This document shows, piece by piece, positions 37,933 through 62,216 of a DNA stretch of 64,000 nucleotides. The notes under the pieces were generated by a model. It did not search any database. It was not told the DNA's origin and worked only from the letters and a program-made list of their open reading frames with translations. The first letter of the stretch is position 1. Every line of letters starts with the position of its first letter. The stretch is from Mytilus trossulus (lineage: Eukaryota), in assembly GCF_036588685.1 (NCBI RefSeq), contig NC_086386.1, positions 3,348,001 to 3,412,000 of the forward strand, in the 5' to 3' direction. The position numbers were made by a program, and so were the translations under genes.

Positions 37933-38132
37933 ACTGTATTTCAAATTAATACTTTTTACACAATTTTAATTAAATCAAATAGATTGGATGAAACTCACAA
38001 GTCAAAAGTTCAAATATTTTTTAATTTTGTTAATTCACTTTTTTCGTTTTATTTGAAAACTAATGTTATAAAATGTCATTCTATCTTATTTACCAAATCC
38101 CATTCATCATTAAGGATGGTTCTATTTTCCAG

Positions 38133-38848
38133 GTATAAAGAATACAACATTCAGTCCTTGGATAACTATAGAAAGTATTCTAATGATGTTCCAGAGTTTT
38201 TAAGAAGCCGTCCAAGAAAATTTGTTGACCATTGTTTAGCCAGAATTCCACCTGCGGCTACACTGATCCCCATTGAAAATATGGAAGAAGTTAACCATGA
38301 TCTGCTGGTTAGAAGTGTTGAGTCTGACAATTTATACCAAGTTAGACTCAATGATGATTTACCAAAATGTTCATGTCCAGATTGGAGAAAACATCACTGG
38401 CCATGTAAGCATATGCTGGCAGTCATGATGAACATGCCAAACAAAGATTGGAATACACTGCCAGAGTACTACAAAGCAACCCCTCATTTCAACATTGATT
38501 TTGGACTTCTGGAAACAAATAGAACAGAAACACTGATTGTTAACAATGCAAGCAGCTCAATGAAAGATGAATGCCAACAAGATTCAACTGCTTGCAGAGA
38601 TAACACAGTAGAAAATTCCTCTTCCAAAGCTCGAAACTTATGTTTAGACAACATTAAACAAATTACATCTAATTTATTTTGTATTAATAACAGCCAATAC
38701 CTAGAGGAGTTAAATAATAGACTGGCAGTGTTGGTAAAGGAAACGGAAATGGAAGCACCTCATCAAAATGGTCTACGATTAAATTTGCCTGCTACCAAAA
38801 AGAAGACCATAAGTAGAAAGCAGAAAAACAACCTTCAGCAAAAAAAAA
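38133..38848 (+). CDS. SWIM zinc-finger exon
   Basis: YQVRLNDDLPKCSCPDWRKHHWPCKHMLAV fits CxCx(n)CxH. Acceptor ttttccag| and donor |gtaagt. Confidence 0.9.
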
Positions 38849-39000
38849 GTAAGTTCCCCGTACAATTTTTTTGGGATAAAATTATGATTAAATTGTTGAT
38901 TTTAATGATCACCTATCTAAAATGTCAAGAACAGTTTGTATTAAAAAGATCTGCTAGGAAAAAAGCAATTAAAAAGCAGTAAGGAACAGGTGTAATAAGT

Positions 39001-39055
39001 TTTTATACGACCGCAAATTTTGAAAAAATTTTCGTCGTATATTGCTATCACGTTG

Positions 39056-39111
<56 letters not shown>

Positions 39112-40986
39112 CGAATACTTTTAGTTTTCGCACTCTAACTTTAGTAAAAGTGAATAGAAATCTCTGAAATTTTAACACAAGGTTTATGACCATAAAAGGA
39201 AGGCTGGTATTGATTTTGGGAGTTTTGGTCCCAACATTTTAGGAATTAGGGGCCAAAAAGGGCCCAAATAAGCATTTTCTTGGTTTTCGCACTATAACTT
39301 TAGTTTAAGTTAATAGAAATCTATGAAATTTTGACACAAGGTTTATGACCACAAAAGAAAGGTTGGGATTGATTTTGGGAGTTTTGGTTTCAACAGTTTA
39401 GGAATTAGGGGCCAAAAAAGGGCCCAAATAAGCATTATTCTTGGTTTTCGCACAATAACTTTAGTTAAAGTGAATAGAAATCAATGAAATTTAAACACAA
39501 TGTTTATGACCACAAAAGGAAGGTTGGTATTGATTTTGGGAGTTTCGGTCCCAACAGTTTAGGAATTAGGGGCCAAAAAGGGACCCAAATAAGCATTTTT
39601 CGTGGTTTTCGCACCATAGCGTTAGTATAAGTAAATAGAAATCTATGAAATTTAAACATAAGGTTTATGACTATAAAAGGAAGGTTGGTATTGATTTTGG
39701 GAGTTTTGGTCCCAACAGTTAAGGAAAAAGGGGCCCAAAGGGTCCAAAATTAAACTTTGTTTGATTTCATCAAAATTGAATAATTGGGGTTCTTTAATAT
39801 GCCGAATCTAACTGTGTTTGTAGATTCTTAATTTTTGGTACCGTTTTCAAATTGGTCTACATTAAGGTCCAAAGGGTCCAAAATTAAACTTAGTTTGATT
39901 TTAACAAAAATTGAAACCTTGGGGTTCTTTGATATGCTGAATCTAAAAATGTACTTAGATTTTTGATTATTGGCCCAGTTTTCAAGTTGGCCCAAATCGA
40001 GGTCCAAAATTAAACATTGTTTGATTTCATCAAAAATTGAATAATTGGGGTTCTTTGATATGCCAAATCTAACTGTGTATGTAGATTCTTAATTTTTGGC
40101 CCAGTTTTAAAATTGGTCTAAATTAAAGTGCAAAGGGTCCAAAATTAAACTAAGTTTGATTTTAACAAAAATTAAATTCTTGGGCCTCTTTGATATGCTG
40201 AATCTAAACATGTACTTAGATTTTTGATTATGGGCCCAGTTTTCAAGTTGGTCCAAATCAGGATCTAAAATTATTATATTAAGTATTGTGCAATAGCAAG
40301 TCTTTTCAATTGCACAGTATTGTGCAATGGCAAGAAATATCTAATTTCACAATATTGTGAAATAGCAAATTTTTTTTTAATTAAGAGTTATCTTTCTTTG
40401 TCCAGTATAGTAAGCAAGAAATATCTGCAAGAATTTTTTTTAATTGGAGTTATCTTTCTTTGTCCGGAATCAACTTAAATCTTTGTTATATACAATATAC
40501 AATGTATATTCACTATTTACTACCAACTGGTAAATTTAAATAATCTTTACCATTCAGTGATAACAAGCAGTTTTTTTACATCTTAATATTTTATGATGTA
40601 TTTAAATGAGTAGTAGTTGTTGCAAACTCCATTAGAATATTTTAATTGATATTAGTTTTGGAATAAGGGAAAGGGGGATGTGAATAAATAATTGGGTTCA
40701 ATTTTTCTCATTTGAAATTTCATAAATAAAAAGAAAATTTCTTCAAACATTTTTTTGAGAGGATTAATATTCAACAGCATAGTGAATTGCTCTAAGAGAA
40801 AACAAAAATTTTAAGTTCATTTGAATACATTCATTCTGTGTCAGAAACCTATGCTGTGTCAACTATTTAATCACAATCCAAATTTAGAGTGGAATCCAGC
40901 TTGAATGTTGTGTCCATACTTGCCCCAACCGTTCAGGGTTCAACCTCTGCGGTCGTATAAAGCTACGCCCTGCGGAGCATCTGGTT
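39001..40986 (+). mobile_element. 2-kb HINE-like element carrying a (GTC)n microsatellite and two satellite-like internal arrays
   Basis: Subterminal inverted repeat ttatacgaccgca (39003) / tgcggtcgtataa (40948). (GTC) repeated about 18 times at 39058-39111; about 160-bp units 39125-39740; about 120/240-bp units 39740-40260; T-run flanks. Confidence 0.88.
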
Positions 40987-42009
40987 TAAAGTTGATGCTG
41001 CTTCACCTTGACCAAAACTTTGACCTAATACAGGATAAATGAACATGATTAATAGATGGACACACAGACCGGCAAACATAATGTCCTGGTACTTTCTATA
41101 GTATTGAGGGCATAAATATAAACACTTCAAATTAAAGTGTGTAAAAGTGCTTCTTACACTAAAATTATTTCATGTATAAAGAAATTTGAGATTAAATGTG
41201 TTTTAGCATAGATGTTCATGTTCATAAGTATCTATGGTTTGTTTAGTTTTAATTGTGTGCTACCTTGACTGTTTGGAAGTTATGGCTTTTGAAAGATTGG
41301 AAAATGGCAAGACACAATTTAATGTAATAAAAATCTGGTTAACCGTCTTTAAGACAGCCTTTTGATTAATTTGAGTAATGTAGAACAGTTGAAGCAATAT
41401 TAAATGCTTATTAACTTTAATTCAAATTGCAGGCAATTTCACAAGACGTCTTACCAAGAGATCTGCAAGCATAAAAAAAGTGCCATTTATGCGAAGACCA
41501 CATTGGAGAAAGTACGCAAAGACACTATCACCGGTTAAAATGAGTTCAAATGTATATTCTGCAGGTAATAGTTATACATTGTTTGAATTTAGTTACCCTT
41601 TTATAATTGTACAAAGAATTAAGGGAGACAAATCTTACATTTATCAATTATTGTGTAAAAATATGAGAATCATTGTAGAGTGTTTGATCTTATATTGTAA
41701 ATGATCTTTTCTCGATCATTCATTGAGGATTGTTGTGTTACCTTCCTTTTCTTATCTTATAATTCTTTTAGCATATATTCTCAAAAAAATGGTAATATAA
41801 AAACTTACATGATATATGTAATCAGATAGATCAACATTTATGTCCCCTACTAAAAAATATGAGAATAGCCTATGCACATTAATTTCATTCTATAAGGTTT
41901 TTTTTAATGAATTTCTAATGGAAATCATATATTCCTACATTCATATAAGTGTACTACAATACATATATAATTTTGATAAAGCTTGAGTCTTTCTGAACTT
42001 TTTAATTGA

Positions 42010-42149
42010 TTACACTGACTTGACTGTTAGTTATTACTGCTCTATGACTATTGCAACTCATTTACAATTCTAAGCAAATTGCAATTTGTTATATAAAACC
42101 ATAAGTTGCAATCGGTGGAGAGCAACACTAACAGTCAAGTTACAGTAAA
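42010..42149. repeat. Small degenerate foldback element
   Basis: ctgacttgactgttag...ttgcaact pairs with agttgcaa...ctaacagtcaagttacag. Confidence 0.65.
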
Positions 42150-42939
42150 ATGTAACTATTGAGAGTGGAGAAATACGGTACTGAAAATTATAAAAAAAAA
42201 ATTGATGTTTTTATTATTGCAAAAAATGCAACAGGGTTATAAACTGCAATAATTAAAAAACTTCCAATTTGAAATCTTTTATATGAATCAAAAAGGATTT
42301 TTCAGGATATCACAAAAAATAATATCTCATTTTAGTCTAAAAGGACATTGAATAATTTCTGAATTTACAAATCATTTGCCAAGGACAGACATTTCAAGAG
42401 TTAAAAGAAAGATTTATTAACAAGCAGTTGGGAAATGTAAAACAGCACATACTTCTATTATTTGATATATGGTTCAAGGAACAAACCTGCTAATGCATAA
42501 AAGAATTTAACAGAAAATGAATACTACAGCTGCCATTGAATTTTTAGGGCTAGGCAATGAAGAGTCAAAGGATTCAATGACAATCAGCCTCACAGAAATA
42601 GATAGAAGAAATGGTAAGTATGAATTTTTAAATTGTTCTAACAATAATTTATATTTTCCAAAACAAATAAATGATGGTGTAGGCACAGTAATGCATTTTG
42701 AAATTTTTCACACGATTAAATTATAGTGCTAGATGTTTTTGATTCTTACAATCTATCAATGTTAGTTGACAATATACTTCTTTGAAAATAATTCATAAAT
42801 TTATAAGCCATAGATTTGTTGGAAATTTACACATGGCCTGCCTGGGTTATGATATTGTAATTTTTGAGATCTGTGTCTGTGAAGTATTAATGAAATTGGA
42901 ATTCAACTTTATCATTTGTATACTTTTGTATAATTTCAG

Positions 42940-45703
42940 CAACTGACTTGTTGAGAAAAATTCAGTCAATTGGAAATGCATCCCATTATATTCTGGCCAA
43001 GGTTTATGGGGTAAATGTAACAGACATTGATATCGCATCACTTTTTGGGAATCGTTGGTTAACTGATCAGGTAAGTTTTAAAATATTCAAATATTCCAGA
43101 TTAATTCTAATATTTTATATATTACATTTTTGAGTTGAAACCTATCAAGATCATGATTTTTTTTTACTTTGGTGGACATTGAAAATTGAAAATGGCCATG
43201 GAGGCCCTAATTTTCATAGAAACTATAGATTTTTTTGATTTTTTTTAAATTTTTAATTTCAATGGATGTGGTTTAATGCAAACTTTCTTTGTAGGATTGA
43301 TCATTAGTAGGTGCCTTCAAAAGATCTAAAAGGGTAAAATTGATGGATATTTTAATGACTTTTTTTAACAACATTTTGTATTGAAGATACATACTAGTTT
43401 TAATGTATATACTATATTCACTTCAAGGTGTGGAAGAATGTTATGACTTTGATGGTGTAATACTATACTAATACCTGCATTAAAGTGGTAACAATTGAAA
43501 ACTGTATATTCTTTAAGAATTATAAATACTATAATCCTAAACTAAGGTTCTAACAGTAATTTAAGTGCTGATATATTTAAATTTTAAAAACATCACATTT
43601 TTATTAAGGTTATTGATGCCTACTTGGCTGTACTTTGTCAAGCACAACAAGACAATGGAAGAAATATCTTGCATATAACTGCTGCAGTAATGACCAACAT
43701 ATGCAAAGGAGATTCAATTGGAAATCAGAATCTATTCCAAATGGTAAAAGTCTATTGATTTAATGAACATTCAGTTAAAATCAATGCTGATACACTATCA
43801 TAACATACCAGGGCTAATAATATACAGCATATTACATTTATTACAGTCAAAGGATTTTGAGAAAAATTTGAATTGATGATTTTACATGCTAAACATACAT
43901 GATATACTAGTTAAAAACATGCATTGTTTTAATTCTGTCTTCTTTTTTTAATGATTAACAACCAAAATAATAGCAAGGAACAAAGAGACTTAAAACTTAA
44001 AATCTATATAGAAAAAACAACAAACCATTATCTACATGTAAGATTTTTTTTTTATATATTTTTAGAAAATCTTAACAGATTATGAGATGATATGTGGAGT
44101 GTATAATCAAGCAGGGAATCACTGGGACCTAGTGGTAGTTGACATTTAATAACATGCATGTCAGCTTCTTGTGATTTTGATTTCTGATTTTTTACATGAT
44201 GTACCCTCATTTCTTTTTTTACTGCCTTTTAAGATGATATTAGGAATAGCATGTAGCAGTCATCACTGGAAATCTAAGTTTTTTTTTATACCCCTCCCCC
44301 TTTAAAAAGGGGGTATACTGTTATAACTCTGTTGTCTATTTGTCAGTCTGTCATTCCCAAATTTTGATCACATTTTTCTCAGGAACTATAATACAAGGAT
44401 ATCTGAAATTTGGATTCAGGGTCTATAAAAGTCAGCCATATCGTGTGTTGTTTTTTAGATTTATCACTCAACTACTTCCTGTTAACCAAAATATTTCGAC
44501 GGGTGTATCATCAGTGAGCAGTAGCTCACAGTTCTACTTGTATTTTTAAATTATTTTTTTTTTTAGATATTAACACCAACTGATGGACGAATACAGTTTT
44601 ACAATCCAATGGGTTTCGAGGCACCAGTTGCGTATCAAGTTCAAAGAAACTGGAGGTACTTTATATTTTATGTATTGATTGTTGTATGGCTGTTTATTGG
44701 ACTTATTATGTTTAACCATTGTCTCTCCATCTGTTTGACTGTCCATCCTCATCATGTGGGACTATTTCTGATATGACATTGAGGATTTATGTAACTTTAT
44801 TCTTTAAAAAGCAAGGAGCTTATCATGGGATCCTGGCACAGCAGAATATTTTATAAGATCTGCAAATCTATGTATACAACATGAAAATAGTTATATATAT
44901 AGTCAAATAAGTGAAAATTGCTAACGAAAATAATTCTATTATCAGTTTGAAAACAGCAGACAACATATAGTTTTCTTTTGAAGGTCAAATGACTTTTTTT
45001 ATATGATTTGACAACATTTTTTCATTTCTTTCAGTGACTATTTGGCATATAGAACCCACTTATTTGCAGAAAAAACAATAGAATGGAAATTGTATGTTGA
45101 AAAACATGCTTTGCAGTTAGATGGTTACAATTGTGGTGTATATTGTTTAATGGTAATTAGTCTGTTATCTTTTTCCAATTGTTATGCTTATTTTAATTCA
45201 TTCAAATGCTTTGGATACAACATCTTGATGTTTTTAATGAATTAAAATTGTATCAATGTATAAGACCAAAAGACACAGAAATAAATAGGTCACCATACAG
45301 CCTTCAAGAATGATCAAAGACCATTCAGCATAGTCGGCTACAAAAGGCCCCTAAATGACAAATGTAAAACAATTCAAGAAGAAAACTTACATCCTAATTA
45401 ATGTACAAAAATATGAACCAAAAATAAATATGTAACACAGCAACAAATTACAACCACTTTGTACAGTTATTAATAAGGGATGATATGGAGATATTAATAT
45501 ATATGTAAATAATTATAAATGATGATATTCACATATTATTATTTTCATGGAAATATGTGAAATAAACACCATGAACTATAAGTTATGCCAAATATTGTAG
45601 TTTGCAGAGAGAATACTGTCAAAAAAAGAATTAACAGGCATTACACAAATAGAGGTCCAGGAAAAAAGGAAAGAAATTGCAGAGACCTTATTACTGTATG
45701 AAG
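42940..45703 (+). CDS. Ulp1/SENP-like cysteine protease domain (6 exons)
   Basis: SLFGNRWLTDQVIDAYL ... GNHWDLVIL ... IQFYNPMG ... QLDGYNCGVYCLMFAERIL. Confidence 0.87.
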
Positions 45704-46375
45704 GTAATTATATAGAAATTAAAATATCTTATGAAGAATTGACTTTCAGAGTATTTCTCTCCTTGTACAGTACTTTAAAAAAAAAATCCTTTGTATGTAT
45801 GTTTTTGTATAATCTGATGGATATATTTGATAATTTTCACAAATTCAGATGCATTCATCCCTCATTTTTTTTCAAAGACCAACCTTAAAATTAGTATTTT
45901 ATAATCCACAGTTATAGGGGAAGAGATAAAATCTTCTTTTACCATCTTATATATAATTTTTGTAAACATTGAACATTTTTATTTAGATTCTACAAATGTG
46001 TGACAGTCTTGAGATTTCAGAAAATATCAGTGTTTATCATCAATTTCTCAGCAAATTCTGTTTGGAAAATTAGATCTTTACAAATGTAAATTGTTTTTTG
46101 ATTGAAACTTGTCCATCAAATGATCATTGTTATCAGCATATTTTCAAGTAAACTTCAATTATATTCTTTCCTTATTTCATAATTGAACCATCTGAGCACA
46201 CTCAACCTCTCTTCAACAAAGAGTGTCACTCAAAACTCAAATGCAGTTGAACTGTTGCATTCAATTCAAATATATATCAACCATTTGGCTGATCTGAAAT
46301 TAACAACTCTGACTGTTTTATTTTTATTTGTTTTTAATTTTGTAATAATTAAAACTTCCAAAAAATGTCTTGCAG

Positions 46376-47065
46376 TTTATATGAAAGATGCTTGTCCCTG
46401 CTGTGGATTTAATGTTCAAGAACAGCCTTGTGTAAGTAAAATCATATGGTATAGAATCAAGACATTCGTTTACAACAGACTACTGTAAATAAAGAAATTA
46501 TTCCTGCATTTATTCTTCTGTTTTTTGAAGAATGAAAAAGAATGTGAGATGATTTTTTTTGTGATTTCATGTTAAATCTGTATTGAGATATATGTATTAG
46601 ATATCAGAATGAGAGTCTTAATAATTGCAATAATCACATAGCATTAAAAAAGTTGTAATAATTTCTAAATTAACAGTATATACAAGGAAAAATTTTCATT
46701 GTTTGCCCCTGTTGTGGCGTAGGAAGCATTGAGTATGCTTTTATTAATTGAAATTATTTAATACTGTATATTCTGGCATTTGTTGAAGCCAGCACTCAGC
46801 TAAATGTTTTAAATCTATATTTGATTGTGTCTTACAATATCTATACCTGCTTATTATATGTAATGATTTTAACATACTGATGTCAACGTAATATAATTGT
46901 TTTATTTTCAATTTTGTGTATAATTTTTATATAAACAAATATTTTATGCAGATTGGTTGTTTAATTTGTGGTAGACACTTCCATAAACTTCCTTTCTGTG
47001 TTGGTGAGAGCCTTGCCAAGGAAGATGCTAATTTTTTCACTTGCAAGATGTGCGAAAACAATATC
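46376..47065 (+). CDS. PHD-like finger (2 exons)
   Basis: CPCC...IGCLICGRHFHKLPFC...FTCKMC gives a C4HC3 pattern. Confidence 0.75.
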
Positions 47066-47171
47066 GTAAGTAAATGTCAATTTTGAAGTTCATATGATAT
47101 AAAAATATGAAGATTTAGTATGAGTGATGGCTAATGAGACAACTCTCCATGCAAAAAGTTTACACATTTAT

Positions 47172-48042
47172 AAAAACTTCTCCCCTGAAACTACTGGACC
47201 AAATTTAACCAAACTTGGATACAACCATCACTAGGGTATCTAGTTTAACAAAGAACATGTCCCCGCCTGCCAACCAACATGGCTTAAAATAGAACATAGG
47301 GATAAAATGCAGTTTTTGGCTTACATCTCTGACTTAAGCATTTGACAATCAGATGTTGGTTGCTGCGTCTGAATTAATAATTTTATGGAAATTTTGCAGT
47401 TTTTTTGTTATTATTTAATATTATTATTAATAGAGATAAACTGTAAACAGCAATAATTCTTCGGCAAATTAAGATCTACAAATAAGTCAGACATGACCAT
47501 AACTTTCAGTTGACCCTTAAGGAGTTATTGCCTTTTATAGTCAATTTTTTTTTAAATATCACAAATTTTTGTAACCTTTTACAAAAATCTTCTCCTCTGA
47601 AACTACTGAGACAAATTCAACCAAACTTGATCATAATCATCATTAGGGTATATAGTTTAGAAAATGTGTCTGACAACCTTGCTTTCCAACCAACATGGCC
47701 GACATGGCTAAAAATAGAACAGGGGTAAAATGCAGTGTTTGGTTTATATCTCTGAAACTAAAGCATTTAGAGCCAATCTGACAGTGGACATAAATATTCA
47801 TCATATTAGAATTTATCTACACTGAAATTTTCAGACATATACCCATTGTTGGGTTTCTGCCCCTGAGTTAGTTATTGTACGAAAATTTTGCAGTTTTTTG
47901 TTATTATCCTAGATATCATTATAGTATCTAATAATATCTAAAGATCTAATGCTCCAAATTATGTTTTTACCTTAATTTACATGATTTCCAAAGCATCAGT
48001 AAATACAGGTGAGCCACACAGGCTCTTGAGAGCCTCTTGTTT
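47172..48042 (+). mobile_element. HINE-like element fragment with about 410-bp internal repeats; related pieces at 32411-32697 and 57268-57679
   Basis: Repeated cttctc(c)ctgaaactactg...gctaaaaatagaaca...atatctctga. The 3' end cacacaggctctt.agagcctct.gtt is shared with ~32670. Confidence 0.7.
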
Positions 48043-48688
48043 TAAATTAATAGGCACATGCCTCTCTGGTATCAAAGTGCAATTGGTATACCAAAATTTC
48101 TTTATATACATGAATTGTATACTAAGAACTTTATCCATTCTGGATTTGAAAAGCAGACCCTTTTAACCTTTTGTGAAGTATCAGTTGTTTGTCAAACATT
48201 CTTTTTTTTTTCAGATAACTTGTTATATATCAACATACTAAACTTCATAATTGTTTTATGCATTAATGTTTTATCTTCTGCAATTTAAATTTAATTGAAA
48301 ATAGAAAAATAATTATCCTGTTCAAGAAAAAAATATAAATTATAAAATATATATTTTGTTTTCATTTATCTTAAAATTGTTATTTCAACCAGCAATTTTA
48401 ATTTGTTGTAAGAAGTCAATAAAAAAAATCACAGAAAAGCTGAAAACACTCCTTAAAAAAGTGATATCATTATTAACCAGACATCAAATAAAAATAAAAT
48501 TGAAATATTATTTAACCACATATTTTTTTTATATAAAGATTCCAGACACAATAGATTTAGGTGGAATATTGGAAGAAAAGCCTGTTAAAGATTCAATTAA
48601 TCCAGATCAATGTAAGTAAAGCTTAACAAATCTACAAAACTTTTTCTGCTTCATTCATCCCTAGTTATTTTCATTTCATTGATAATTT

Positions 48689-49147
48689 GTTATACCCCCG
48701 CTTTAAAAAAGGGGGGTATACTGTTTTACCTCTGTCTGTCCTTCCGTCAGTCAGTCAGTCGGTCCGTCCCATGAATATTTTTGTCGCATTTTTCTCAGCA
48801 ACTACCATACAAGGATTTCTGAAATTTGGTTTCAGGGTTTATCTAAGTCAGCTATATCGTGTGATGTGTTTCCAGATTGATCACTTAACAAATTCCTGTT
48901 TACCGAACACGTGTATGATTTTACACATGATAGCCAAGTTGAAAATTTTCGTCACATTTTTCTCAGGAACTACAATACAAGGATTTCTGAAATTTGGTTT
49001 CAGGATTTATATAAGTCAGCTATACCGTGTGATGGGTTTTCAGATTCAATACTTGACAACTTCCTGTTTACCGAACACTATTAAATATATTATCCACTTG
49101 CGGCGGGGGTATCATCAGTGAGCAGTAGCTCGCAGTTTCACTTTTTT
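48689..49147 (+). mobile_element. HINE-like element; shorter relative at 44283-44545
   Basis: tataccccc...gggggtata stem-loop, (gtca/gtcc)n, two about 170-bp units, 3' gggggtatcatcagtgagcagtagctc hairpin. Confidence 0.8.
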
Positions 49148-50016
49148 ATAAACTCCTTCATTTTAAAAGGCAGACATACAGCATTAAATGTATCATTTAT
49201 GTCTTTATACAATGCTATATTTATGACTTATAAACTCTCCTTGACATTGTGAAAACAATTTGCAGGAATTCAAAAAACTTTAATATGTACTTTATATTTC
49301 CTGATAAGTTTTTATACTAGGCAAGTAACATAAGGAATTACCATTGTCTGTTTATAGATTTCTATTATATGTAGGTGTATTTAAGCCTATGTTCACCTGT
49401 ATTTTTTATGTACATCTTACAGACTGTGAACCAAAACCAGAAATGAAGAAGACTTTTACCGGAACAACTGCCCTGTTTGTGAAAAACCTCATTGAATCTG
49501 TAAGACAAATAATATGGACTACTAGCATAAGTAACATTACTGTTTGATGGTCCATAAAATATTTTATATGATACTATTATAACACCTAAACCAATTGATT
49601 TCAACACCTGTCTTATTACTGCAAAGTTAAATGACTCAACCAAATGGTATGCAACTTATACACAATATGTATTACCACAAAACTTACATCAAGTTGGAAT
49701 TTGGAAACTGTCATTTCACTAGTTGAGTACCTTTTAAATGCTGAATTTGTCATTTCTATATTGTCTTTCTTATAAATAAAAGATGTCTGCCATGACCAAA
49801 TGTTATAGAACTTAAAAACTTAAAACATTGTTACAAAATAAACAGATCAAGCTTAAATTTGGGTTGCATAACTTTTATTAGTCATGTTCCTTTTAAAATG
49901 GATAAATGGAAAAATAACTGAATTTGTTTCTTTTTACTTCTTAAATATAAGAAAAAAAGATGTTATATGATTGCCAATGAGACAACTCTTCACAAGAGAC
50001 AAAATGACTGCACAAT

Positions 50017-53000
50017 AAAGGTTGGTGTTGGAAGGGATAGCGTAGAAGTAGATATGAATATTCATGTACACTCGGAAGTTCTCTTAACGGAAGTAAATAT
50101 GGGTCGTGCTAAAACAAGTAAACAAAATAGAAAAACGCACGCGCACATGCACGTGGGGACATCTATGAGAAGAAAGACTATATATTACAGATTACTTATG
50201 ATTACAATTATTATATTTAACATGATTGAACAAAGCTAATAACATTTTAAATATATAGATTCTAACTGGGTACGATGATGAGTTAAGTTACGTTAGAGAT
50301 CGTTAGAACACAGGAGTTTGGAATTTCGAGAGAAGCTCTACTGTGATAATCGACTTTATATTTTTACCCCCTTATTGATAGGATTTCAAACTCCTGTTCT
50401 TAGACATTTACAAGAAGTTCAGGTCACAGTAGTATAATTGAACGGACTTTTGTTAATTTAAAGGTAAATTAATAGATCAGCTCTAGTGTGAGATGATTTC
50501 CAAATGTTTTCAAATATCAATGCTATGTACATATACATATAAGTTTAACAATGTTTTAATAACCAAAAACCATGCCAGGAAGTTAATGATTGGACCTATT
50601 GTCATGATTTTCTTTTTATTTTCTCTTTCATCCTTTTTTTCAAATTTTTTAAACATGGCCAGAAATTTTTAACATGCATGTATTTAAGAATTGACGTATT
50701 TACACTTGTATGCAAATTTGTCCGCCATTACATAAAATCACACAGGTTCCCGTAAACTTTGATATCATTATTCAAAACATTTGATGTTACAACTAAAATG
50801 TGATTGTTGCATGACGTGAAAAGGTTATTCGGAGGTGATATAAGGTCATTTGGAGGCAATATACAGCTAAATACCAAGAGTGTAAACAGGTTTATTGAAT
50901 GCTTCTATTTGGTAATTCATTGGGGTGTAAAAGTGTTGACAGTCCTAAGCGCTTCATTCTAAAAATGTGCGCACGGTCAACACTGTTACAACCCTATGAA
51001 GTTACAAAAAGAAGCATTCAATAATATAATTACATTTTTTAGCTATAATCATGAAAACACGAATTTAATAATAGTTTTATTTACTTCACCTAGCACTTTA
51101 TTGTGAGACCACATGTTATCCTGAACGAAAGTTTTATTGAGTAATGCAATTGCTTAAGGAATAACATGTGATGTGCAGTTAGCCAATTAGAGTAAAGTAT
51201 TATAATGAAACATACATCTGTTAACGTAATTATTAAATGTTAAAAGACTCCTTGAATCAATGTTACCTTGACATCATTTTTAAAAAAAAGTCTTTGTTTG
51301 CAACTTTTACCATGTACATCATATTTACATGAAGATATGTATATAATATTTTTTTCATTTCAGGTCAAAAATTAAATAAAATGTCTACCATTAACTTAAA
51401 ATATCATCCAGATATTGAATCTGCTTATGCTGCAATTAGAAAGTATGAACTGGAGACCACTTCTAAGTACATATTATACTACAGAGAAGCTGGTTTCAAT
51501 CAGAAAGGTAACTGTTTTGTCCCCTGCCACACAATGGCAGGAAATATATTTAATATTTTTAAAGCTTTTTTTTTCATCCTGCTAAATACAACAATACTCG
51601 TATATAGACCTTAACTTATTTGTAAAGTTCACAGCAGTAAGAAACATTAAGTTAAGGCAGAGTTATCTTCTTTCCTTTCATAAAGTTCATACAACAGGCT
51701 TGTTCTTATTGGTTTTGTAAATCCATTTAACAACAGAAAAAAGATATTGTGTTAAATTCTTTGATAATTACAAGTAAATTATAATTTTGATATATATATA
51801 TACTTAACAGATAAATCATATTATTAAAGGAGGGATATTTGCAAAAAATACCATTCGAGAGAATGTTAATTTTCACGAGTCGTAAGGCGAGGGAAATTCA
51901 TTCTCAAGACTAGTAGTTAACGTTAAAAAACACATTGATGATCGTGACATTACAAACGTCCAGTCAGATAGTGTATTTTTTGGCAAACAACACGGCATAG
52001 AGGGTAAAAAAGGCTTATCCTTTTTGCTTATACCTAGGCGGCGTTAAAAAATGAAAAATTTTCTTTTGATAACAGTAAATTGGTGAAAAATACACTGGCT
52101 ATCAACCAATCAAAACCAAGGATTCTTACATAAGGTGTAATTAAGTCCAAAATTATATACCGGTAACGTGCGCTGGCAATATTGCATGTGCTTACAGGTT
52201 CAGTTTCTCTTGTAGACTTGGATAATTTGGACAAGAAAAAAATATGGTGGGATAACCATATCCCCTTTGATGGTATTCCGTATTGCCTTTTGGGGTCTGA
52301 AGTGTGGGACTGTCATCACGGGCCAGACAGACACGTGAATGATAAAAAGAAACTTGTTGCCAAAAAGGTATTTCAAAATTTTCTTTTTAGCAATAAAAAT
52401 AAGAAATTTATTTATTAACTTGAAAGACATTGTACATTTTACAGATTAATGTGTTAAATACAAACTAAATATATATGTTCTTTTAATGTCTTCAATAGTT
52501 AATATATTTTAACAGTTTTGATTAGAATTAGTTTAATTTATAATACTCCTATCTCTTACATAGGTTTGGTAGATTCAAGGAAGTACATTGTGCAACCTTT
52601 GTACACTGGGTCCTATAAACAAGGTGATAGGTTGTGCTGCTGGAATAGGTCACCTTTTTCAGCTTGGAAATATTTGAATAGGGCGGTAAAACTATCAGAA
52701 ATATTATTCAATAAAGTTCCCACAACTGCGTCAGTAATCTTTCTTGGTCAGTGTTTTATCAACCAATTTTCTCACATTTGACACTTTGTTATTCCACTTT
52801 TACATAACATTACATAGAAACCCAAATAATATTGGAAAAGAGATATAGGAAGATGTGTTGTGAGTGCCAATGAGACAACTCTCCATCCAAATAACAATTT
52901 ATAAAAAAGTAAACCATTATAGGTCAATGTACGACCTTCAACATGGAGCCTTGGCTCACACCGAACAACAAGCTAAAAAGGACCCAAAAATTACTAGTGT

Positions 53001-56000
53001 AAAACCATTCAAACGGAAAAACCAACGGTCTAATCTCCATAAAAAATGAGAAACAACAAGAAACATGTATATATTACATAAACAAATGACAACAACTGTA
53101 CATCAGATTCCTGACTTAGGACAGGTGCAAACATTTGCAGTGGGAATTAAAAGTTTTAATGGATCCAAACCTTCTCCCTTTTTGTCGAGCCTTCGATTTT
53201 TGTCGAAAAAGAGAGACTAAGCGATCCTACATTCCGTCGGCGGCGGCGGCCACAAATATTCACTCTGTGGTTAAAGTTTTTGAAATTTTAAAAACTTTCT
53301 TAAACTATACTGGATTACTTCCAAACATGGACAGAAGCTTGTTTATGATCTTAAGATAGTATCCAGAAATTAATTTTGTAAAAATAAATTCCATTTTTTC
53401 CGTATTTTACTTATAAATGGACTTAGTTTTTCTGCGGGTAAAAATTACATTCACTCTGTGGTTAAAGTTTTTAAAATTTCCATTACTTTCTTAAACTATC
53501 CTGGGTTTGTACCAAACATGGACAGAAGCTTGTTTATGATCATAAGAAAATATACAGAAGTAAATTTTGTAAAAAAATTAATCCATTTTTTCAATATTTT
53601 ACTATTACAATGTATTAAATGGACTTAGATTTTCTGCCAAGAAACAACACATTCACTCTGTGGTTAAATTTAAAAAAAAATAATAACTTTCTTATACTAC
53701 TTTTAATTTGTACCAAAGTTAGATAGAAGCTTGTTTATGATCAAAGCTAGTATTTAGATGGAAATTTTGTTAATATTTTGTACATGTGTATGTGTATTTT
53801 ACTTATAAATGGATTTAGTTTTTTTTTCCAGTTAACATTACATACAGGCTGCAGTTAAAGTTTTTAAACATTTATTAGATTCATAAACTATCCTGGATTT
53901 TTTTCCAAACTTGGTCAGAAGCTTCTTACAATCAAAAGATTATATCAAGAATGATATTTTTAATTTTTTTTCCCTCATTTTTGTTGAGCCTGTGTTTTTC
54001 AGCAAAAGTAGGCGAGACACTGGGTTCCGCGGAACCCTTACAAATTTTGCTGAAAAAATAGCATAACATCACAACATAGAAAAACACATGACAAAATATC
54101 AATTGGCAGACTTAACTCAATCAAAAAACATAAATTAATACATAATAGGTATACGTTTTTGAAATTTAAATTTTATGAAAAGGGTGGGGTAACAGAAACC
54201 CAATGACACCCCCTTTCAATTAAGTATTGAAGTACGTGCATCTTAAAAAAATCAGTACCCTGAGATAACCTTTTAATACTAAGGAGTCAATGAATTAAAT
54301 TTAGTATTTTATAAGTTGTTATATGTGAAACACCTATAATTAATTGTGATACATAAAATTGAGAATGGAAATGGGGAATGTGTCAAAGAGACAAAAACCT
54401 GACCATAGAGCAGACAACAGATGAAGGCCACCAATGGGTCTTCAATGTAGGGAAAAACTCCCGCACCTGGAGGTTTCCTTCAGCTGGCCCTTAACAAATA
54501 TGTATACTAGTTAAGTGATAATATAGATGATACATGCATGGATGTTGTATGTGCATTTTTTCCATTTTTTTTACAGGATGAGATGGAAGAAGAACATCCA
54601 TACACCAAAAATTCAAAGAAAAGGTTTTTAGTTCAGAGTACCAAGAAGATGGACTGCAAGTCACAGATCACTCTTAAAGCTGTTGTTAAGTTTCCTGACT
54701 TTAAGGTAAACTATTCTTTTTCTTTCTTAAAGTAACTATATTCCTTAAATGGAAGATACCTAAAATGTTACCAGGAAATGGTTGTTTATGTTGCTTAAAA
54801 TTGTTATAACACTCAATTCATGGTATCCTGATGAACATGGAAAATTATAGTACGAGCATGCATTTTGTACTTAAGACACATATTCTTTTTATGCCCTTAC
54901 CTACAATAGTAGAGAGGCATTATTTTTTCTGGTCTGTGTTTGTTCGTCCGTCTGTTAAAGGTTAAAGTTTTTGGTCGAGGTAGTTTTTGATGAAGCTTAA
55001 GTCCAATCAACTTGAAAACTTAGCACACATGTGCCTTATGGTATGATTATTCTAATTTAAATACCATTTGATTTTTTTCCCCATTTCACGGTCTATTGAA
55101 CATGGAAAATGATAGTTCAAGTGGGGCATCCGTGCACATTCTTGTTCTTCATCTTCTTTTCCAATACATAGAATTACAGGTGGGGATATAATTAGTACTA
55201 CAAGTAGAGTTTACTTTGTAGTAACTTTGAAAAGTACCTGTATAGCAATAATGTCCATTGTCCTATTATGACAAAAATGTTTATAGTTATTATTCATTTA
55301 TATGAATATAAAAAACTGATCCATTGTTACAGGTTGATGGCCTTGATAGCACTTACAGGAGAAAAAAATGTGCATCCAACCTTAGAGCAGCCAATTTCAA
55401 TCATGTAAAGAAAGACGTGAAGATTGTGTTAATTCTTCCTGATACCAAATCTCATCAGAATCATCTAATTGGTGAAGTAATGCATATATTTATCATCTTA
55501 ATACAGTGCATACAAATAATGTAAAAATGTTTATAAAGTCATTGTTAATTTAGAAATTAGTGTGTTCATTTATTAATATGAAACTTAAAAAAATGTGAAA
55601 TATAATTAAAGCAATTACCAAAAAAAATATTACAGCTGAAATGATCACTGCAGATTTTAATAACTACGAATTTTGCAATAATTTACAATTAATTTGTGTG
55701 AGTTCTTTAATTTCTTTCCTACGATCTGATTTCTTCGGTCATTCTTTTTTTGTCATACGTAGGTTCAGATGTGCAGTTTCATATTTTATTAAACATGTTA
55801 AATATTTCATTCTTATAAATGTGAAGAAAAAGATATAGTTCCTCACATTTTTTTATTTAATTATCCAATTGTCAATGAATAAATAAAGAGAGTAACTTAT
55901 CAAAGAATTCAAATATTGAAAACGTATTCAATAAGTGACCAAAGAACACAATGATTCTTGTATACACCAGGGACAGTCTACAATGTATACTAGTGGGACT

Positions 56001-59000
56001 AGTCACTTATAACCATGTCTATACAAATTTGCAGACAGAACTGTGCTGTTGCTGATGTCACTTGACTTCATAGCAATTTTTTTATATTTACGAATTTTTC
56101 TTCATAACTGTACGTTCAAGTTAAACGAAAAAACATTTTTATCAAAATTTATACATTTTGTCATTGCAAAATGCTGTTTTTGAAAACATTCCTCAGATAG
56201 TTTTATAAAATATAAGATCTTTTGAACTTTGAGGTATTTTGTTAGTGAATTACAAGTAGTGGCCATCTTGTTCGATATGTAAACCCTTCTACACGACTGG
56301 AGTGTTCTTCAAAACGATACGTCTCAATCTTATATTTTTTGTCATGGTAAATTGATATTAATCAGATTTTATATTAACAAATATGTACTGTGAAATAAGC
56401 AAATAGCTAGTAGGTTCCTATATCAGAGATACGAAACCAAGTGTTTTGTTCAGTGGTATCGAAAGAAATGAGTCCCGTTAGTATAGAAAGTCCCTGAATA
56501 CACATAAAATCAATAGGTTGTAATGTTGCTCATTGAATGTTTTCAATATATGTGAATTCTTCCATTACTTATTAGATATAAATGTTATGACATTCTCCTT
56601 TACTGTATACCATTTTATTAGTTGTCCCTATCCATTTCAGTTTTCAGGATACTCCCAACCACTTGATAGCCAAGTGAAAGAACACATCAGGGAATTGGTT
56701 TTTGATGGTGTCAGGAAAGTGTCCGAAATGAAGAGGCACCTAAACATCTTTGTTAAGAGAGAACTTTCTTTGGACATGCCTATAACTAACAGAAGATTTC
56801 ATCCAAATGAGCGAGACATAAGAAATCATATGTATTTAGCCTTAACCAAGACAAGGTAGGATAATAGTCAGTACTATGGTCATGTGTTTGATTTTAAGTT
56901 TATCAGTCCACTACCAACATAGGTTGAAGGGGACCTTAGGTTTGCATCTGTCTGTCAGTTATAATCAGTTTTCCACACTTGTTTTCTTCATGCTTTAAGA
57001 CGCTGATTTGATAACTGGTATGTAGTTTTTTAATGACAAGTTACAGATGTTCAATTTTTTGTTCCAGTGTAATGATTTTGAGTTATGGTACTTGGACTTG
57101 TAAAATTCACTCAAATAATTAGTTTCCACACCTTTTTCATCAAGCTTAAAGATTTTGTTATATTCTTTACATCATAAGAAGTTATAGCATTGTGTTCCAG
57201 TAAAATGAAATTTTAATTAGTAGTGACTAAGAATTGAGCCTCACCGAAAGCTTTTTTTAACATGTTTTTATTAGCTCACCTTGCCTGAAGGGAGGGCAGC
57301 TTTTGGTTTTTATCTTAAATATTATTATAAATAAAGATAAACTGTAAATAGCAATAACGTACAGCAAAATAAGAGCTCCAAATAAGTTCACTTGATCAAA
57401 GTGGTCAAGTGACCCCTTAAGGAACTAATGTTCTTTAAATTAATTTTTTAACAATGTTTATAAATTTTTAACAATTTTTACAAAATATTTCCCACTGTCA
57501 CTTCTGGGCCAATTTCATTATAGATAGAGATAATTGTAAGCAGCAAGATTGTAAAGTAAGATCCACAAACACATCACCAACACCAAAACATAATTCTGTC
57601 ATGAATTTATCTGTGTCCTTTGTTAAATATGCACAAAGACTGAGATGATCCACACAGGCTCTTTAGAGCCTCTAGTTCTTATCATTTTTTTTTCTTCATT
57701 TTTTCCCCTATAAACATGATAAATCATTCCAATATTTTCTATAATATATCATCTGAATATTGTCGATGATATGGTTCAAGAATGAAGTCTTTTGCAAAAG
57801 GGGGATACCATTTATAAAAAACACAAAACATTTTTTTGGATTGTTTAATGGTATGATGTTGTCATCATCTGCGTTGTTGTTGTCAGACAACCAGATCCTA
57901 ATAGAGTTTAAAAAGTAAGAAATTTGTATTTATGATTTTTTTTCAGGTTTTCAAAGAATGATCAACAGAATTTACAATGTCTGGTGAGGAAATGGGAGGC
58001 TGAATATACATTGGATACTTTTTTTTTAAGACTGGGGTGAGAATTATTAGTTACCTTATGAATATAAGAAATAGGAAAGATTATCAATGCGTTTTTGATG
58101 CTTTCTGTCTTTTTACTTTGTTTATAGGAGATTGAAGTTTATGATATTGTAAGTTTTGTTGGGAAGATATCCAAAAATATTTGAGGACACATCCTTTATG
58201 TTTGATAGATTTCCTTTATGCTATTAGAATTCCAGTATACAGTAACATATCTTGGTTACCTTAATCCATTTCTCAAATTAATAGATATAGGAGGGTCTCT
58301 AAAGTTCTTCCTTTGACAATAAGTATGCTCTTTGTGAAAAAAAATTAGTGTTAGCTTGATGTAAATGAGAGACTGCAATGCCAAGTGGTGTTTCTTATTC
58401 TTTCTTTTTCTCTTACAATATGCAGATCAGATGGTAAACAAAAAGAAAAAAGTAATGATGATGTTGAGGAAGTTCCCCAGTTTCTTTTTGTTCATCAATC
58501 GGAAACACAGAAGAGGCTTCTAAATATTTATGGCCAGGAGATTTGCTTGTTGGATGCAACATATAAAACATCGAGATATGACCTTCCTCTGTTCTTGGTT
58601 TGCGTCAATACAAATGTTGGATATAGTGTTGTAGCGTCTTTTATAGTTGCTAATGAGAATCGCTACACCATTCAAGAGGCACTCATTAAATTGAGAGATT
58701 GGAATCCCATGTGGAAGCCCAAATATTTCATGTGTGATTTTGATTTGAGAGAAATTTGGGCGCTTGAACAAACATTTGAAGGTAAACTCAGGAAAAATTC
58801 ATGAAACATTGTAACTGAATTATCAATTTCATGTTTTACAAATTACCTTCGATATCACTACTAACATATATTTACTTTAATAAAAAAAAAGATTTTTTTT
58901 GCAAAATCAGCATAACTATTCAGAATAAGTGGATTTTATGCAAATTGAAAATATTATACAAACTATTGATCATTTCCTGAATTTATGATTAACTTTAATT

Positions 59001-62000
59001 TTTGAATATCAATGCATTGCTTAAATTTTTAATTTTGTTTCTAGATTATATCCTCTACTTGTTGGTACGTATGATTTGGTAAGTGGGTGGTTGTGCTTTT
59101 TAATTGTTGTACTGGCATTTATATCACTATATATTCACATACGTACATACATACATCCTGAACATACATTGTACAAGCTTTTTTTAATCACACAAGCTTT
59201 TGTTTATATCACCTGCTTATTATTTTTCTTTAGATTTATGCTCTTTTCTTTATATCATGAAGAGCACATTTTCATGTCAATACTTCATAATATGGCTGAA
59301 AGTTATTATAATGTTGTATACATATACATTGAAGGTAAACTTATAGTTTGGATAAAGAATTAGGATAGTGTTATTTTCCCTGATTAATTTATTATTAGTT
59401 TTACCATTGTTTCAGTTCTTAAAATTTTTTAAATATTATAATCAAAAATTCAATTTCCCTTATTGTTTTCCTTAAGAGTATAAATTTCATACATTTTAAT
59501 ACTTATGATTTTCAGTTCCAGTTATCATAAAATGGACACATTATGGAAATCTTTCAGCTTTAATATTGTCATCTTTATACTTTTCTGATTGGTGGCTTAG
59601 TGTTTCAATATATATGTTATATATATATATATAAAGTCAGGGGCAGATCCAGCCAATTTCAAAAAAGGAGTAAAGAGGGATTTCAACTTTATACTCCCAT
59701 TCAAATGCATTTATTATCCTAAAAAAAGGGGTGTCCTACACCAGGACCCTTTGGATCTGCCACTGATATAGTGTACAGTGTTACATTCAGTGTTCTTATT
59801 TTAATTGATATTTTAGAGAAATAATTTAGTATAATTACTACTTTATTTCTAATAATTTGATGAACTAACTATCAGAAAGAGAAAACCTGCATTGTTTTTG
59901 AAAGTTTATAAATCACATTGTAAAAGTAAAAACTTTTTATATTCTGGCATATATGGTTTTTAAAAACACTTATATGAAAATAAAATACAAAATAGATAAT
60001 TTTACTGCAATTATATGGTTGGTCTACCTTGTTGCATCTTACTTTAAATTCCTTATTACAATTATTAGCTGATATTTCAAAAGAATTTTATTCCTTTTAA
60101 ATAAATTTTTTTTTTACACGACATAAAACCATATAGTTAACTCCTTACATTGATTTTATAAAAGTGAATTTATTGTTTATGTCAGTTGCAAATTACAGTA
60201 TGAATGCATGTTACTTAGTTATCAAGTGTTTAGATGTGTTGATTTATGTAAAAGATTCTTTTGAAGTGTGCCATTGAGCACCTAAATACATAGCCTAATA
60301 ATATTTTAACTTTGTAATTGAATAGAACAATTTGTATGTTTTAGGTTTAATGGTGTATCTTTGTGACTTCCATAGGGAACAAGCCTGGCACAGATGGCTA
60401 AGAGAAATTAAGCATGATTGCATTGATGAGAAAGATGAAATTAAAAAAATGTAATGCTTATTTATAAAGTTAAAAAGATATATTTATTGTCACATGTACT
60501 TCTGAACTCATAAAAAAATACTAAATTATATAATGTAGTTGATGCTACATGATGGTTAAAATTCAATGTTACTTATTGCATTTTACCAGCAACATACAAA
60601 CGTTAAGATGTTTAATTATATTTCCAACAATCAATACAGCTCTTCTATAAAAGCATGCAAAACAAAACTTTGGTCGGCTTGCTTACTATGTTTGCTTGGA
60701 TGGTTGCAAACAATAGGTAGGTGGAGTTTCAATATATACTGGGATTTGATTGGACATAAATTGAAGTTAATGTTTATTGTCCAATCAAATGCCAGTATAT
60801 AGTAAACAAACTACCTACCTGTTGTTTACAAACATCCAAACTATCACAGCAAGCAAGTTGATCAATGGTTTGCTTTGCATGCTTTTATAGATGAACTGTA
60901 AGTATTTAGTTTGCATACAGCACATGACTATGAGTAACAGTTTTCAATCCATGACAATTCTTTTAGAGTGCATAAATGGAAAATGACCATGTTTAAACGA
61001 AAGTAGGCTCCCTGAAAATATAGCCCTCAATTAGGAAACATTTATTGATTTTGTCATACAGTCAGTTGTGAATAAATTCTGGAATGCACCAGTAAGACAA
61101 AAATTTCAAAGTTATCAAAATGTGACATATCCGTTTGTTAGTTACATGAATTAGTTACATATTTTTTCAAATGATTTGATTGAATAATTTTACTTTCAGG
61201 TTAAGAGAAATAGCTGATGCTGATTCTGCAGAGTCATATGCAAATGCTTTGCAACAATTAAGAAGCAGTGATATTTTCAAGGCAAAGGTCTCCTTGAGAA
61301 ATTGGCTCGAAAACAAATGGCTCCTGAACTGCAAGGTTTGTTAATTTAAAATTTAAATTTTGACACCAATTACCACCAGCTTAATTTTTTTGAATAGTAC
61401 AGGTATATAAAAGGGATAGTAGCTACAATTTTGACAAAATTATAACCAAGTTTTATAGCTGTTATAATCAAAGATATGTACTTAAAATATAAAATAAGAT
61501 TGTTGTAATGTTAACATGAACTACAGATGTGGTAATACTTCATTATAAATATTGTGTTGTGTGTCTAGTCTTCTCATTGATTATGCATCTGTGGTGGAGA
61601 GTTGTCTCATTGTCAATCATACCACATCTTCTTATTTTTATATTATCAACAGTTGAACAGTTCAAATAACTTGCAACATTATCACACATTTTATACAATT
61701 GAAAAGTTGTTTATTACACAATGTTATTAGGTGTCTGTTTATTATAAATTTTTCAGAGATGGTCAAAACTTTTCAGAAATTCACTCTTTAACATCAGAGT
61801 GAATACAACCAATGGCCTTGAAAGACAACACAAAGAACTCAAGGAAAACTACTTGACAGAGTATATAGATAAATCTCTGTCAAGTATGGTGACATCATTG
61901 GTAACCAAATACTTACCAGATAGTTATGAGAGGTATTTTTTACTCTGATAAGAAATTAATTTATTGTTTGAGACCATTTGCAGCCACTTTAAATCCCCAA

Positions 62001-62216
62001 AATGATTACTCTCATTATTTATTAGTAGTTAGGGAATACGTACTTAATGCAATTATTGACTGCATATATTTGTTTAAAACAATGTTAATTTTTGGTCAGT
62101 TTTATTTTGTTGGTATATTGTATTATGAATATCTCTTTTGTAATCTAATAATGTTTTAAAAAGGTTGATTGAAGCACATTTTAAGAATGAAGTGTTCTAT
62201 CCTTCTGACATTATGT
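50017..62216 (+). repeat. Segmental duplication, copy 2 (12.2 kb), retains the 820-bp segment missing in copy 1
   Basis: Identity begins at aaaggttggtgttgg and ends at ctgacattatgt. The left junction truncates a SINE-like repeat and the right junction enters a different repeat family. Confidence 0.97.
51381..61932 (+). CDS. CaRF-MULE gene copy 2: exons 1-10 in frame (CaRF-like domain plus complete DDE core), 3'-truncated with no SWIM, Ulp1 or PHD exons in this window
   Basis: Exons 51381-51507, 52198-52367, 54577-54705, 55333-55476, 56641-56855, 57947-58036, 58426-58781, 60345-60450, 61200-61335, 61757-61932. Read-through of the last donor stops at 61948 (about 554 aa). Confidence 0.8.

Follow-up and report, generated by a model that had tools for sequence, protein, structure and literature searches.

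We analysed a window of 64,000 nucleotides from the genome of the mussel Mytilus trossulus (contig NC_086386.1, here C14, positions 3348001–3412000, in an assembly of 1.30 Gb with ~31% G+C). In its right-hand part, a multi-exon gene joins a DNA-binding module of the kind found in the calcium-response factor CaRF to the catalytic core of a MULE transposase. The gene lies in copy B, which re-starts in tandem a larger duplicated unit, copy A (Table 1). Peptides resembling CaRF are encoded in + strand open frames at 52182–52418, 54538–54735, 55324–55524 and 56533–56859, and a MULE-like stretch is encoded in the + strand open frame 58385–58804. We compared six pieces of the window with Pfam using hmmscan, with a cut-off of 28.9 bits for the CaRF domain family ALS2CR8 (PF15299). 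Three of the six pieces exceeded this cut-off and are colinear on the profile, the piece at 58385–58804 matched both the PF21056 (ZSWIM1-3_RNaseH-like) and PF10551 (MULE) families, and no Pfam family was matched by the two pieces at 51381–51614 and 55324–55524. The ALS2CR8 and MULE domain matches are far beyond chance. From splice sites and reading phases, we built a model of the gene with 10 coding exons in copy B (Table 1). Exon 1 encodes the N-terminal strand-strand-helix-strand element, upstream of the Pfam ALS2CR8 boundary, and exon 5b corresponds by homology to the linker of a paralogue (L016) that has both domains in one open frame.

Table 1. Duplicated copies and exons of the CaRF/MULE gene in the window (position 1 is the first nucleotide of the 64,000)
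Feature	Position	Strand	Description
Copy A	25855..50019	+	Full duplicated unit (at least 24 kb) holding the same gene, from which an 815-bp deletion has removed exon 5
SWIM last coding exon	38131..38862	+	PF04434, 39.7 bits; within the window in copy A only; 92% identity to P0004 residues 518–764
Copy B	50020..62216	+	12.2 kb partial tandem re-start of the unit; abuts the end of copy A
Exon 1	51381..51507	+	Start ATG; GT donor after 51507; no Pfam match alone
Exon 2	52216..52367	+	PF15299, 38.7 bits, profile 6–50; AG acceptor, GT donor
Exon 3	54577..54705	+	PF15299, 32.4 bits, profile 56–90; second conserved Cys (MDCKSQ)
Exon 4	55333..55476	+	LPDTKSHQNH, conserved His pair; no Pfam match alone
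Exon 5	56641..56855	+	ALS2CR8 profile 166–231, 39.3 bits; helix-turn-helix-like C-terminal subdomain
Exon 5b	57947..58036	+	Linker exon between ALS2CR8 and MULE core; open in the required frame
Exon 6	58426..58781	+	First half of RNase-H-like DDE core; first and second Asp (LLDATYKT, FMCD); PF21056 48.3 bits, PF10551 37.7 bits
Micro-exon	59045..59064	+	20 nucleotides; GT..AG joints in X1 and X2 contigs
Exon 7	60345..60450	+	CxxH motif (LCDFHREQAW); frame and splice sites
Exon 8	61200..61335	+	Splice sites; 93% identity to M. coruscus P0154 residues 175–219
Exon 9	61757..61932	+	Third catalytic residue (NGLERQ); donor without partner exon in copy B

The modelled exons correspond to a 764-residue protein of M. 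galloprovincialis (VDI37107.1, here P0004), with 92–100% identity exon by exon: 92% between exon 1 and residues 54–106, and 100% between exon 2 and residues 106–162. P0004 carries PF15299 (96.5 bits), PF10551, PF21056 and PF04434, and its model skips exons 4 and 8. Conserved Cys, Cys and His residues of ligand-like character occur in this order in exons 2, 3 and 4 of the window (WDCHHG, which holds the first conserved Cys, then MDCKSQ and SHQNH); the near-invariant columns of our alignment of the domain (A2) include C87, C128 and H187, and the P and H of the exon 4 motif are near-invariant as well. In the core, we assigned the catalytic D, D, E and CxxH columns according to the MULE literature. 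The first D was kept in 90/90 and the second in 89/89 fused relatives, the C and H of CxxH were kept in 87/88 and 88/89, respectively, and the E column was invariant in 28/28 long fused relatives. P0004 retains all these residues, as do exons 6, 7 and 9 of the window. The SWIM CxC...CxH columns are conserved in 24–26 of 26–28 long relatives. We found no SWIM exon for copy B within 11.8 kb downstream of its breakpoint; copy B is without this exon and is unable to make the full-length protein.

We next considered transcript evidence from contigs of two public runs (X1 and X2) mapped to 54500–60499. The runs are presumed to be RNA by prediction only, and we took them as RNA because their contigs show spliced joints, all of the GT..AG type. 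X2 has the joints 54705>55334 and 55476>56641, which connect exon 3 to exon 4 and exon 4 to exon 5, and X1 has the joint 54703>56639, which connects exon 3 to exon 5; exon 4 is thus skipped in one transcript contig, as it is in the P0004 model. Both runs have the joints 56853>57945, 58035>58425, 58779>59043 and 59063>60344, which lead from exon 5 through exon 5b, exon 6 and the micro-exon to exon 7. Contigs of 1646 and 2162 nucleotides connect exon 5 with exons 5b, 6 and 7; contigs span 60344–60452, and a loose end in X1 after 60452 reads into the first bases of exon 8. In paralogue L016, one uninterrupted frame of 248 residues (4819–5562, − strand) matches ALS2CR8 (34.2 bits), PF21056 (52 bits) and MULE (37.5 bits). 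Because spliced contigs join the exons of both domains, and because the paralogue has both in a single frame, the ALS2CR8 and MULE halves are one gene.

Inclusion of the 20-nucleotide exon shifts the frame, such that exon 7 then opens with a stop codon. This exon is absent from the public models P0004 and P0154, and no direct joint between exons 6 and 7 is listed in the X1 and X2 contigs, which show presence and not absence. A product made with it would keep the DNA-binding module but end after the first half of the catalytic core; alternatively, such a transcript could be degraded. Two intronic stretches, 54900–55100 and 57500–57700, have a depth far above that of the exons in all four runs that we mapped (X1, X2 and two runs of raw reads), and show numerous loose ends; both belong to interspersed repeats that are abundant and transcribed, with related copies at 19107–19444, 28679–29021 and 52841–53183.

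A preliminary description of this DNA, made from the letters and their open frames, had proposed that a CaRF-like N-terminus is directly attached to an intact DDE transposase at 51381–58781. The peptides that it quoted are present in + strand open frames where it placed them. The resemblance to CaRF is upheld by the three colinear matches and by the profile alignment described below, and the attachment by the spliced transcripts, the single frame of L016 and the presence of both domains in P0004. "Intact" is correct for the D, D, E and CxxH residues but not for the gene as a whole, with its missing SWIM exon, duplication breakpoint and stop-introducing 20-nucleotide exon. Similarly, the proposed extent takes in exons 1 to 6 but overlooks exon 5b and ends early, since the gene in copy B continues past exon 6 to 61932.

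The combination of domains is not particular to mussels. We searched 1.84 billion representative sequences with a profile of the exon-5 region (alignment A1, five paralogues), and obtained 1185 clusters at E ≤0.001 and 313 at E ≤1e-10, most matches being short fragments. Among the best 150 clusters, the ten longest are divided by Pfam into five with ALS2CR8 and a MULE core and five with ALS2CR8 alone. A search with P0004 listed 120 proteins, of which 110 carry PF15299 and PF10551, nine are without PF15299 and one is without PF10551. These listed relatives come from bivalves, Priapulus, Hydra and other cnidarians, Lingula, a bryozoan and a stick insect, and, among deuterostomes, from sea urchins, sea stars, a sea cucumber, amphioxus, Ciona and cyprinid fish. 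In some of them, a Ulp1 protease domain (PF02902) or a PHD finger is present in addition, and a Mya arenaria copy is already named CARTF-like in the database. The ALS2CR8 and MULE architecture, with or without SWIM, is widespread in animals and already visible in automatic annotation.

We also observed Mercenaria and Mya proteins (P0112, P0271, P0276 and P0311) in which ALS2CR8 is fused to an unrelated conserved C-terminal domain, one that also occurs in animal proteins whose names are zgc:193801 or, wrongly, TAPT1 homolog isoform X2. This fusion is a second re-use of the ALS2CR8 module. A homologue search with P0112, dominated by the zgc:193801-like C-terminal domain, returned no CaRF sequences; a search with P0126 limited to its domain returned invertebrate CaRF-like proteins and no vertebrate CARF.

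CaRF is known from vertebrates as a neuronal calcium-response transcription factor, and work on it has concerned its regulation of BDNF and of neuronal genes. Our comparisons with CaRF rest on invertebrate CaRF-like proteins from Oscarella, Rhopilema, Lingula and Amphiura. These stand-alone proteins score 148–197 bits for ALS2CR8, the fused proteins 96–129 bits, and none of the eight CaRF-like proteins (8/8) has a MULE, RNaseH-like or SWIM match in Pfam at E up to 5. Alignment of CaRF-like with fused proteins by hhalign gave a probability of 99.9% and an E value of 2.5e-35 over 243 columns. The match begins upstream of the Pfam boundary, includes the region homologous to exon 1, and ends right after the three-helix part; downstream of the domain, hhalign detected no remnant of the transposase core in the CaRF-like proteins. 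Two proteins named calcium-responsive transcription factors by NCBI (Lingula P0396 and Amphiura P0392) have the same motifs in the same order as the window, and in the ESM Atlas the Lingula domain has a chordate CaRF cluster as its nearest neighbour (feature score 0.92, template modelling (TM) score 0.67). Judged by these profile comparisons, the DNA-binding module is certainly homologous, over its whole length, to that of stand-alone CaRF-like proteins.

The mussel also has an orthodox stand-alone CaRF gene. We found it by mapping Lingula and Amphiura CaRF onto 44.304–44.344 Mb of contig C10, where it occupies 44319200–44329260 (L033 and L034); its first domain exon is 72–76% identical to the Lingula and Amphiura proteins, and the CaRF-specific C-terminal motif is present. 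The window gene does not have the make-up of a CARF orthologue, since a MULE core and SWIM come after its module; the true CaRF orthologue of the mussel is the C10 gene. Comparison of intron positions, which the preliminary description had suggested, separates the two genes as well. Within the domain, the exons of the C10 gene break after FVNTG, TCPAR, GFGQE and IRKQL, and those of the window gene after FNQK, VAKK, PDFK and LIGE; by alignment and Pfam coordinates, none of the approximately four positions coincides. A recent DNA-level capture of host CaRF exons is therefore disfavoured, whereas the comparison is silent on an ancient capture.

To our knowledge, the CaRF DNA-binding domain has no assigned fold or origin. 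An AlphaFold model of a 276-residue protein (P0003, the product type of paralogue L019), computed with a 112-row alignment, had a mean predicted local distance difference test score of 91.3. The best structural match of its N-terminal subdomain was AFT2, a protein with a WRKY-GCM1-type fold. Structural leads from the ESM Atlas include plant FAR1/MULE clusters, with a TM score of only 0.29. There was no WRKY or GCM chain among the best 50 matches listed for each VIA structure search, nor in a Foldseek search of the PDB at E ≤0.001, and a sequence profile searched against the PDB gave no WRKY, GCM or FAR1 match, only Ulp1/SENP proteases, which correspond to the optional C-terminal domain. On the predicted structure, assignment of the module to the WRKY/GCM1 fold seems plausible.

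We built a tree, also suggested by the preliminary description, of domains with and without a MULE core (112 of 114 proteins with a near-complete domain, the isoforms P0151 and P0153 being dropped; 223 columns; quick maximum likelihood). Architecture labels came from our own hidden Markov models, by which P0090 is called fused although Pfam does not call it so. The eight CaRF-like rows form one clan, on one side of a branch with a Shimodaira–Hasegawa-like approximate likelihood ratio test (SH-aLRT) value of 99. A central split, also with an SH-aLRT of 99, has fused proteins on both sides, and P0004 is on the side away from the CaRF-like clan. The stand-alone proteins P0146, P0011 and P0073, together with the Mercenaria/Mya group that carries the other domain, are placed among fused proteins, although some of these may be fragmentary gene models. 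The tree requires at least four changes of the stand-alone label, three of them forced by starred branches.

Descent of CaRF from a transposase is the likely direction. The module is N-terminal in the fused proteins, where MULE transposases carry a Cys/His DNA-binding domain, and WRKY-GCM1 domains have been described in such transposases (passages of Babu et al., 2006, PMC1702500). The alternative is that a stand-alone CaRF-like host gene is ancestral and that an early animal MULE captured the module once, giving rise to all fused forms. This scenario draws on the age of the CaRF-like clan, which includes the sponge Oscarella and the jellyfish Rhopilema as well as Lingula and Amphiura, on its place to one side of a well-supported branch where the unrooted tree permits a root, and on the lack of any trace of a MULE core in CaRF-like proteins by hhalign or Pfam. 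It is opposed by the position of the module, by the match of the N-terminal subdomain to AFT2, by the FAR1/MULE leads, weak as their TM score is, and by the stand-alone proteins nested among fused ones with their forced label changes; the absence of common intron positions opposes it only insofar as capture was recent. We consider capture from a host gene to be rather unlikely.

The passages of PMC1702500 available to us mention neither ALS2CR8 nor CARF, and those of a paper on the ZSWIM family (PMC10236294) state that the SWIM domain occurs in MuDR transposases and say no more on the link. In the parts that we saw of the open-access literature, supplementary files aside and with passages of PMC10236294 and PMC10898136 included, no paper links ALS2CR8 or CaRF to MULE, Mutator, SWIM or transposases.

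The recent history of the window gene is one of duplication. Self-comparison showed that 50017–56577 and 57392–62216 are 99.985–100% identical to 25855–32414 and 32410–37234, respectively, the deletion in copy A corresponding to positions 56578–57391 of copy B. Joining of exon 4 to exon 5b in copy A would shift the frame. The tandem arrangement could have arisen by duplication very recently, or could be an artefact of assembly or haplotypes. The unit recurs on contigs C3 (85.46 Mb) and C14 (66.87 Mb) at 97–99% identity and on C12 at 93–96% identity, and exon 6 is present in five genome copies at 99–100% identity. Copies are embedded in common segments of at least 24–33 kb, with similarity continuing into flanking DNA. 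Copies A, B and C3 have a common left end, each with a different left flank, and the similarity of copy B to other copies stops at 62216, a breakpoint inside the gene. The interval 50017–62216, considered as a whole unit, was ruled out by the DNA downstream in copy A, which extends the unit to at least 24 kb.

Several features indicate how the gene now spreads. There are no terminal inverted repeats linking 50017–50100 to 62130–62216, and no target-site duplications, such as the 8–11 bp ones expected of a MULE, common to the flanks of copies A, B and C3; this negative result covers the ends of the 12.2 kb repeat and the copy flanks, the right end of the larger unit not having been located. Inverted matches that recur at the ends belong to a short interspersed repeat. 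At least 10 introns interrupt the gene over ~12 kb. Between copies, we counted 5 substitutions in 1632 exon positions and 98 in 10123 non-exon positions (Fisher p 0.006), and, in a second comparison, 6 in 1632 and 88 in 9486 (Fisher p 0.019), such that coding exons change ~3-fold more slowly than the surrounding DNA. Because terminal repeats and target duplications are lacking, flanks are shared over at least 33 kb, introns number at least 10 and exons change more slowly, we regard the gene as resident, and conclude that it now multiplies by segmental and tandem duplication.

We weighed this against an active autonomous MULE transposon that uses an ALS2CR8-type DNA-binding domain and has left near-identical copies by recent transposition. 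Such an element would account for the retention of the DDE and CxxH residues, for the five copies with exon 6 at 99–100% identity, and for the three copies with the same left end and different left flanks. Moreover, some relatives fall in many-member clusters (e.g. P0179, with 263 member sequences), and some carry the Ulp1 protease domain, a domain associated with MULEs. It would not account for ends that no inverted repeat joins and no target duplication borders, for the introns, for similarity that runs at least 24–33 kb into flanking DNA, for the breakpoint within the gene at the right end of copy B, or for exons that change more slowly than introns. We consider active transposition improbable. 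A giant element is formally still admissible, since we did not find where the large unit ends on its right side. An annotation illusion, in which neighbouring CaRF-like and transposase-like genes make two proteins, could appeal to exons up to 2.4 kb apart and to two raw RNA runs without reads on them, but it is hardly credible given the GT..AG-spliced 1646- and 2162-nucleotide contigs, the single frame of L016 and the 110/120 listed relatives with both domains in one protein.

Overall, we are fairly confident that the gene is a low-copy, multi-exon descendant of a MULE transposase, and that copy B is one recent and incomplete copy of it. The product of the gene begins with the ALS2CR8/CaRF module, formed by a Cys/His beta-sheet subdomain and then a three-helix subdomain and presumably binding specific DNA, and continues with the RNase-H-like DDE core and its CxxH motif, followed in complete copies by a C-terminal SWIM zinc finger. 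In this mussel, the gene would now act as a resident of the host genome, or as a family of such a gene in decay, and not as a jumping element.

A number of observations weigh against this view. None of the five copies examined was seen to be both complete and expressed: copy B is without SWIM, copy A is without exon 5, exon 5b of the C3 copy is interrupted by an insertion of ~1.8 kb, and the C12 copy is degenerate, with exons 3 to 5 missing and with indels. The copy at 66.87 Mb of C14 alone has all exons, and it is without ~1 kb upstream. Both assembled transcripts, X1 and X2, carry the stop-introducing isoform, and come from runs only presumed to be RNA. Two certain RNA runs, from which we mapped raw reads (6% and 18% of each), had a depth of 0 on the exons, indicating that expression is low or tissue-restricted. 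The slower change of exons rests on 5 to 6 substitutions, and with codon counts as low as 6 synonymous to 4 non-synonymous, and 7 to 2, selection cannot be proved. Lastly, an unrooted tree cannot separate loss of the core from gain of the module.

Further features lie around the copies and in their diverged relatives. Exons of a nucleoside diphosphate kinase gene (PF00334, 29.9–44 bits) are found on the − strand at 21299–21433, 22232–22351 and 25664–25786; the gene is head-to-head with copy A, and ~70 bp separate the end of its first coding exon from the left boundary of the unit. The junction at 50019/50020 falls inside a short interspersed repeat. Right after the copy B breakpoint, 62217–64000 holds repeated units ~0.6–0.9 kb apart, with recurring open frames reading DITYCIHLPLLHPFF. 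We checked the ends of the paralogue family L016, L017, L018 and L020 for transposon ends, and saw a tandem array and an inverted duplication: L018 has at 499–3972 an array, at least 3.4 kb long, of 127-bp tandem repeats between ALS2CR8 exons, and L016 and L017, on C11, form an inverted duplication with 99% identity over 5.5 kb.

These results change the evolutionary picture given in the preliminary description, which had treated CaRF as a vertebrate factor derived from the WRKY/GCM1-like region of this MULE lineage, and the locus as preserving the ancestral, transposase-linked state. CaRF is not a vertebrate novelty, as the orthodox gene on C10 and a stand-alone clan reaching sponges attest. 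Derivation from the MULE lineage holds as far as homology of the module goes; the direction is likely, but is not shown by the unrooted tree. The WRKY/GCM1 likeness is plausible from the AFT2 match, but not established, given that structure searches returned no WRKY or GCM chain. The locus does not preserve an ancestral state: it is a recent duplicate, 97–100% identical to its copies, with many introns and no terminal repeats. Only the domain architecture is old, extending from cnidarians to fish.

Most likely, the DNA-binding end of such a transposase gave rise to CaRF a single time, earlier than the divergence of the animal phyla. We give about even credence to the fuller proposal that CaRF is an animal-wide gene with a single origin before the split of sponges, cnidarians and bilaterians, in which an ALS2CR8-type Mutator transposase had its entire DNA-binding end exapted, and that mussels keep both an orthodox CaRF and expressed transposase-linked paralogues. 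If so, truncation by the 20-nucleotide exon to the module and half a core would be a living example of the emergence of a factor. The locus itself is ordinary for a mussel genome; its value is in the interpretation and not in a new kind of system. Sharing of the module with widespread animal Mutator-type transposases gives the CaRF domain an evolutionary context, and supplies hundreds of diverse sequences from which the domain could be modelled and its contacts with DNA predicted.

Among known systems, the gene is closest in its N-terminal part to CARF/ALS2CR8 proteins (PF15299), with which it shares the strand-strand-helix-strand element, the Cys/His subdomain and the three-helix subdomain. 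CaRF-like proteins differ in having the module in mid-protein (residues 201–447 of 765, or 211–421 of 644), in being without the MULE/SWIM part, and in having a common C-terminal motif of their own. With MULE transposases such as MuDR MURA, Muta1 and Jittery (PF10551), the gene shares the RNase-H-like core with D, D, E and CxxH, the C-terminal SWIM finger and an N-terminal Cys/His DNA-binding domain, with Ulp1 present in some relatives. Unlike these transposases, it is bounded by neither terminal inverted repeats nor target duplications, contains 10 or more introns, and spreads segmentally in units of at least 24 kb; its DNA-binding domain is of the ALS2CR8 type, as opposed to the FAR1, WRKY and DBD_Tnp_Mut types named in Pfam. 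The core fits PF21056, the family of vertebrate ZSWIM1/ZSWIM3, better than PF10551 (48.3 versus 37.7 bits in the window, and 52 versus 37.5 bits in L016), and in both ZSWIM1/ZSWIM3 and the mussel gene a SWIM finger follows the core. In plants (FHY3/FAR1) and yeasts (Aft1/Aft2), MULE transposases or the DNA-binding domains of such enzymes have given rise to transcription factors, and CaRF is likely to be an animal case alongside them.

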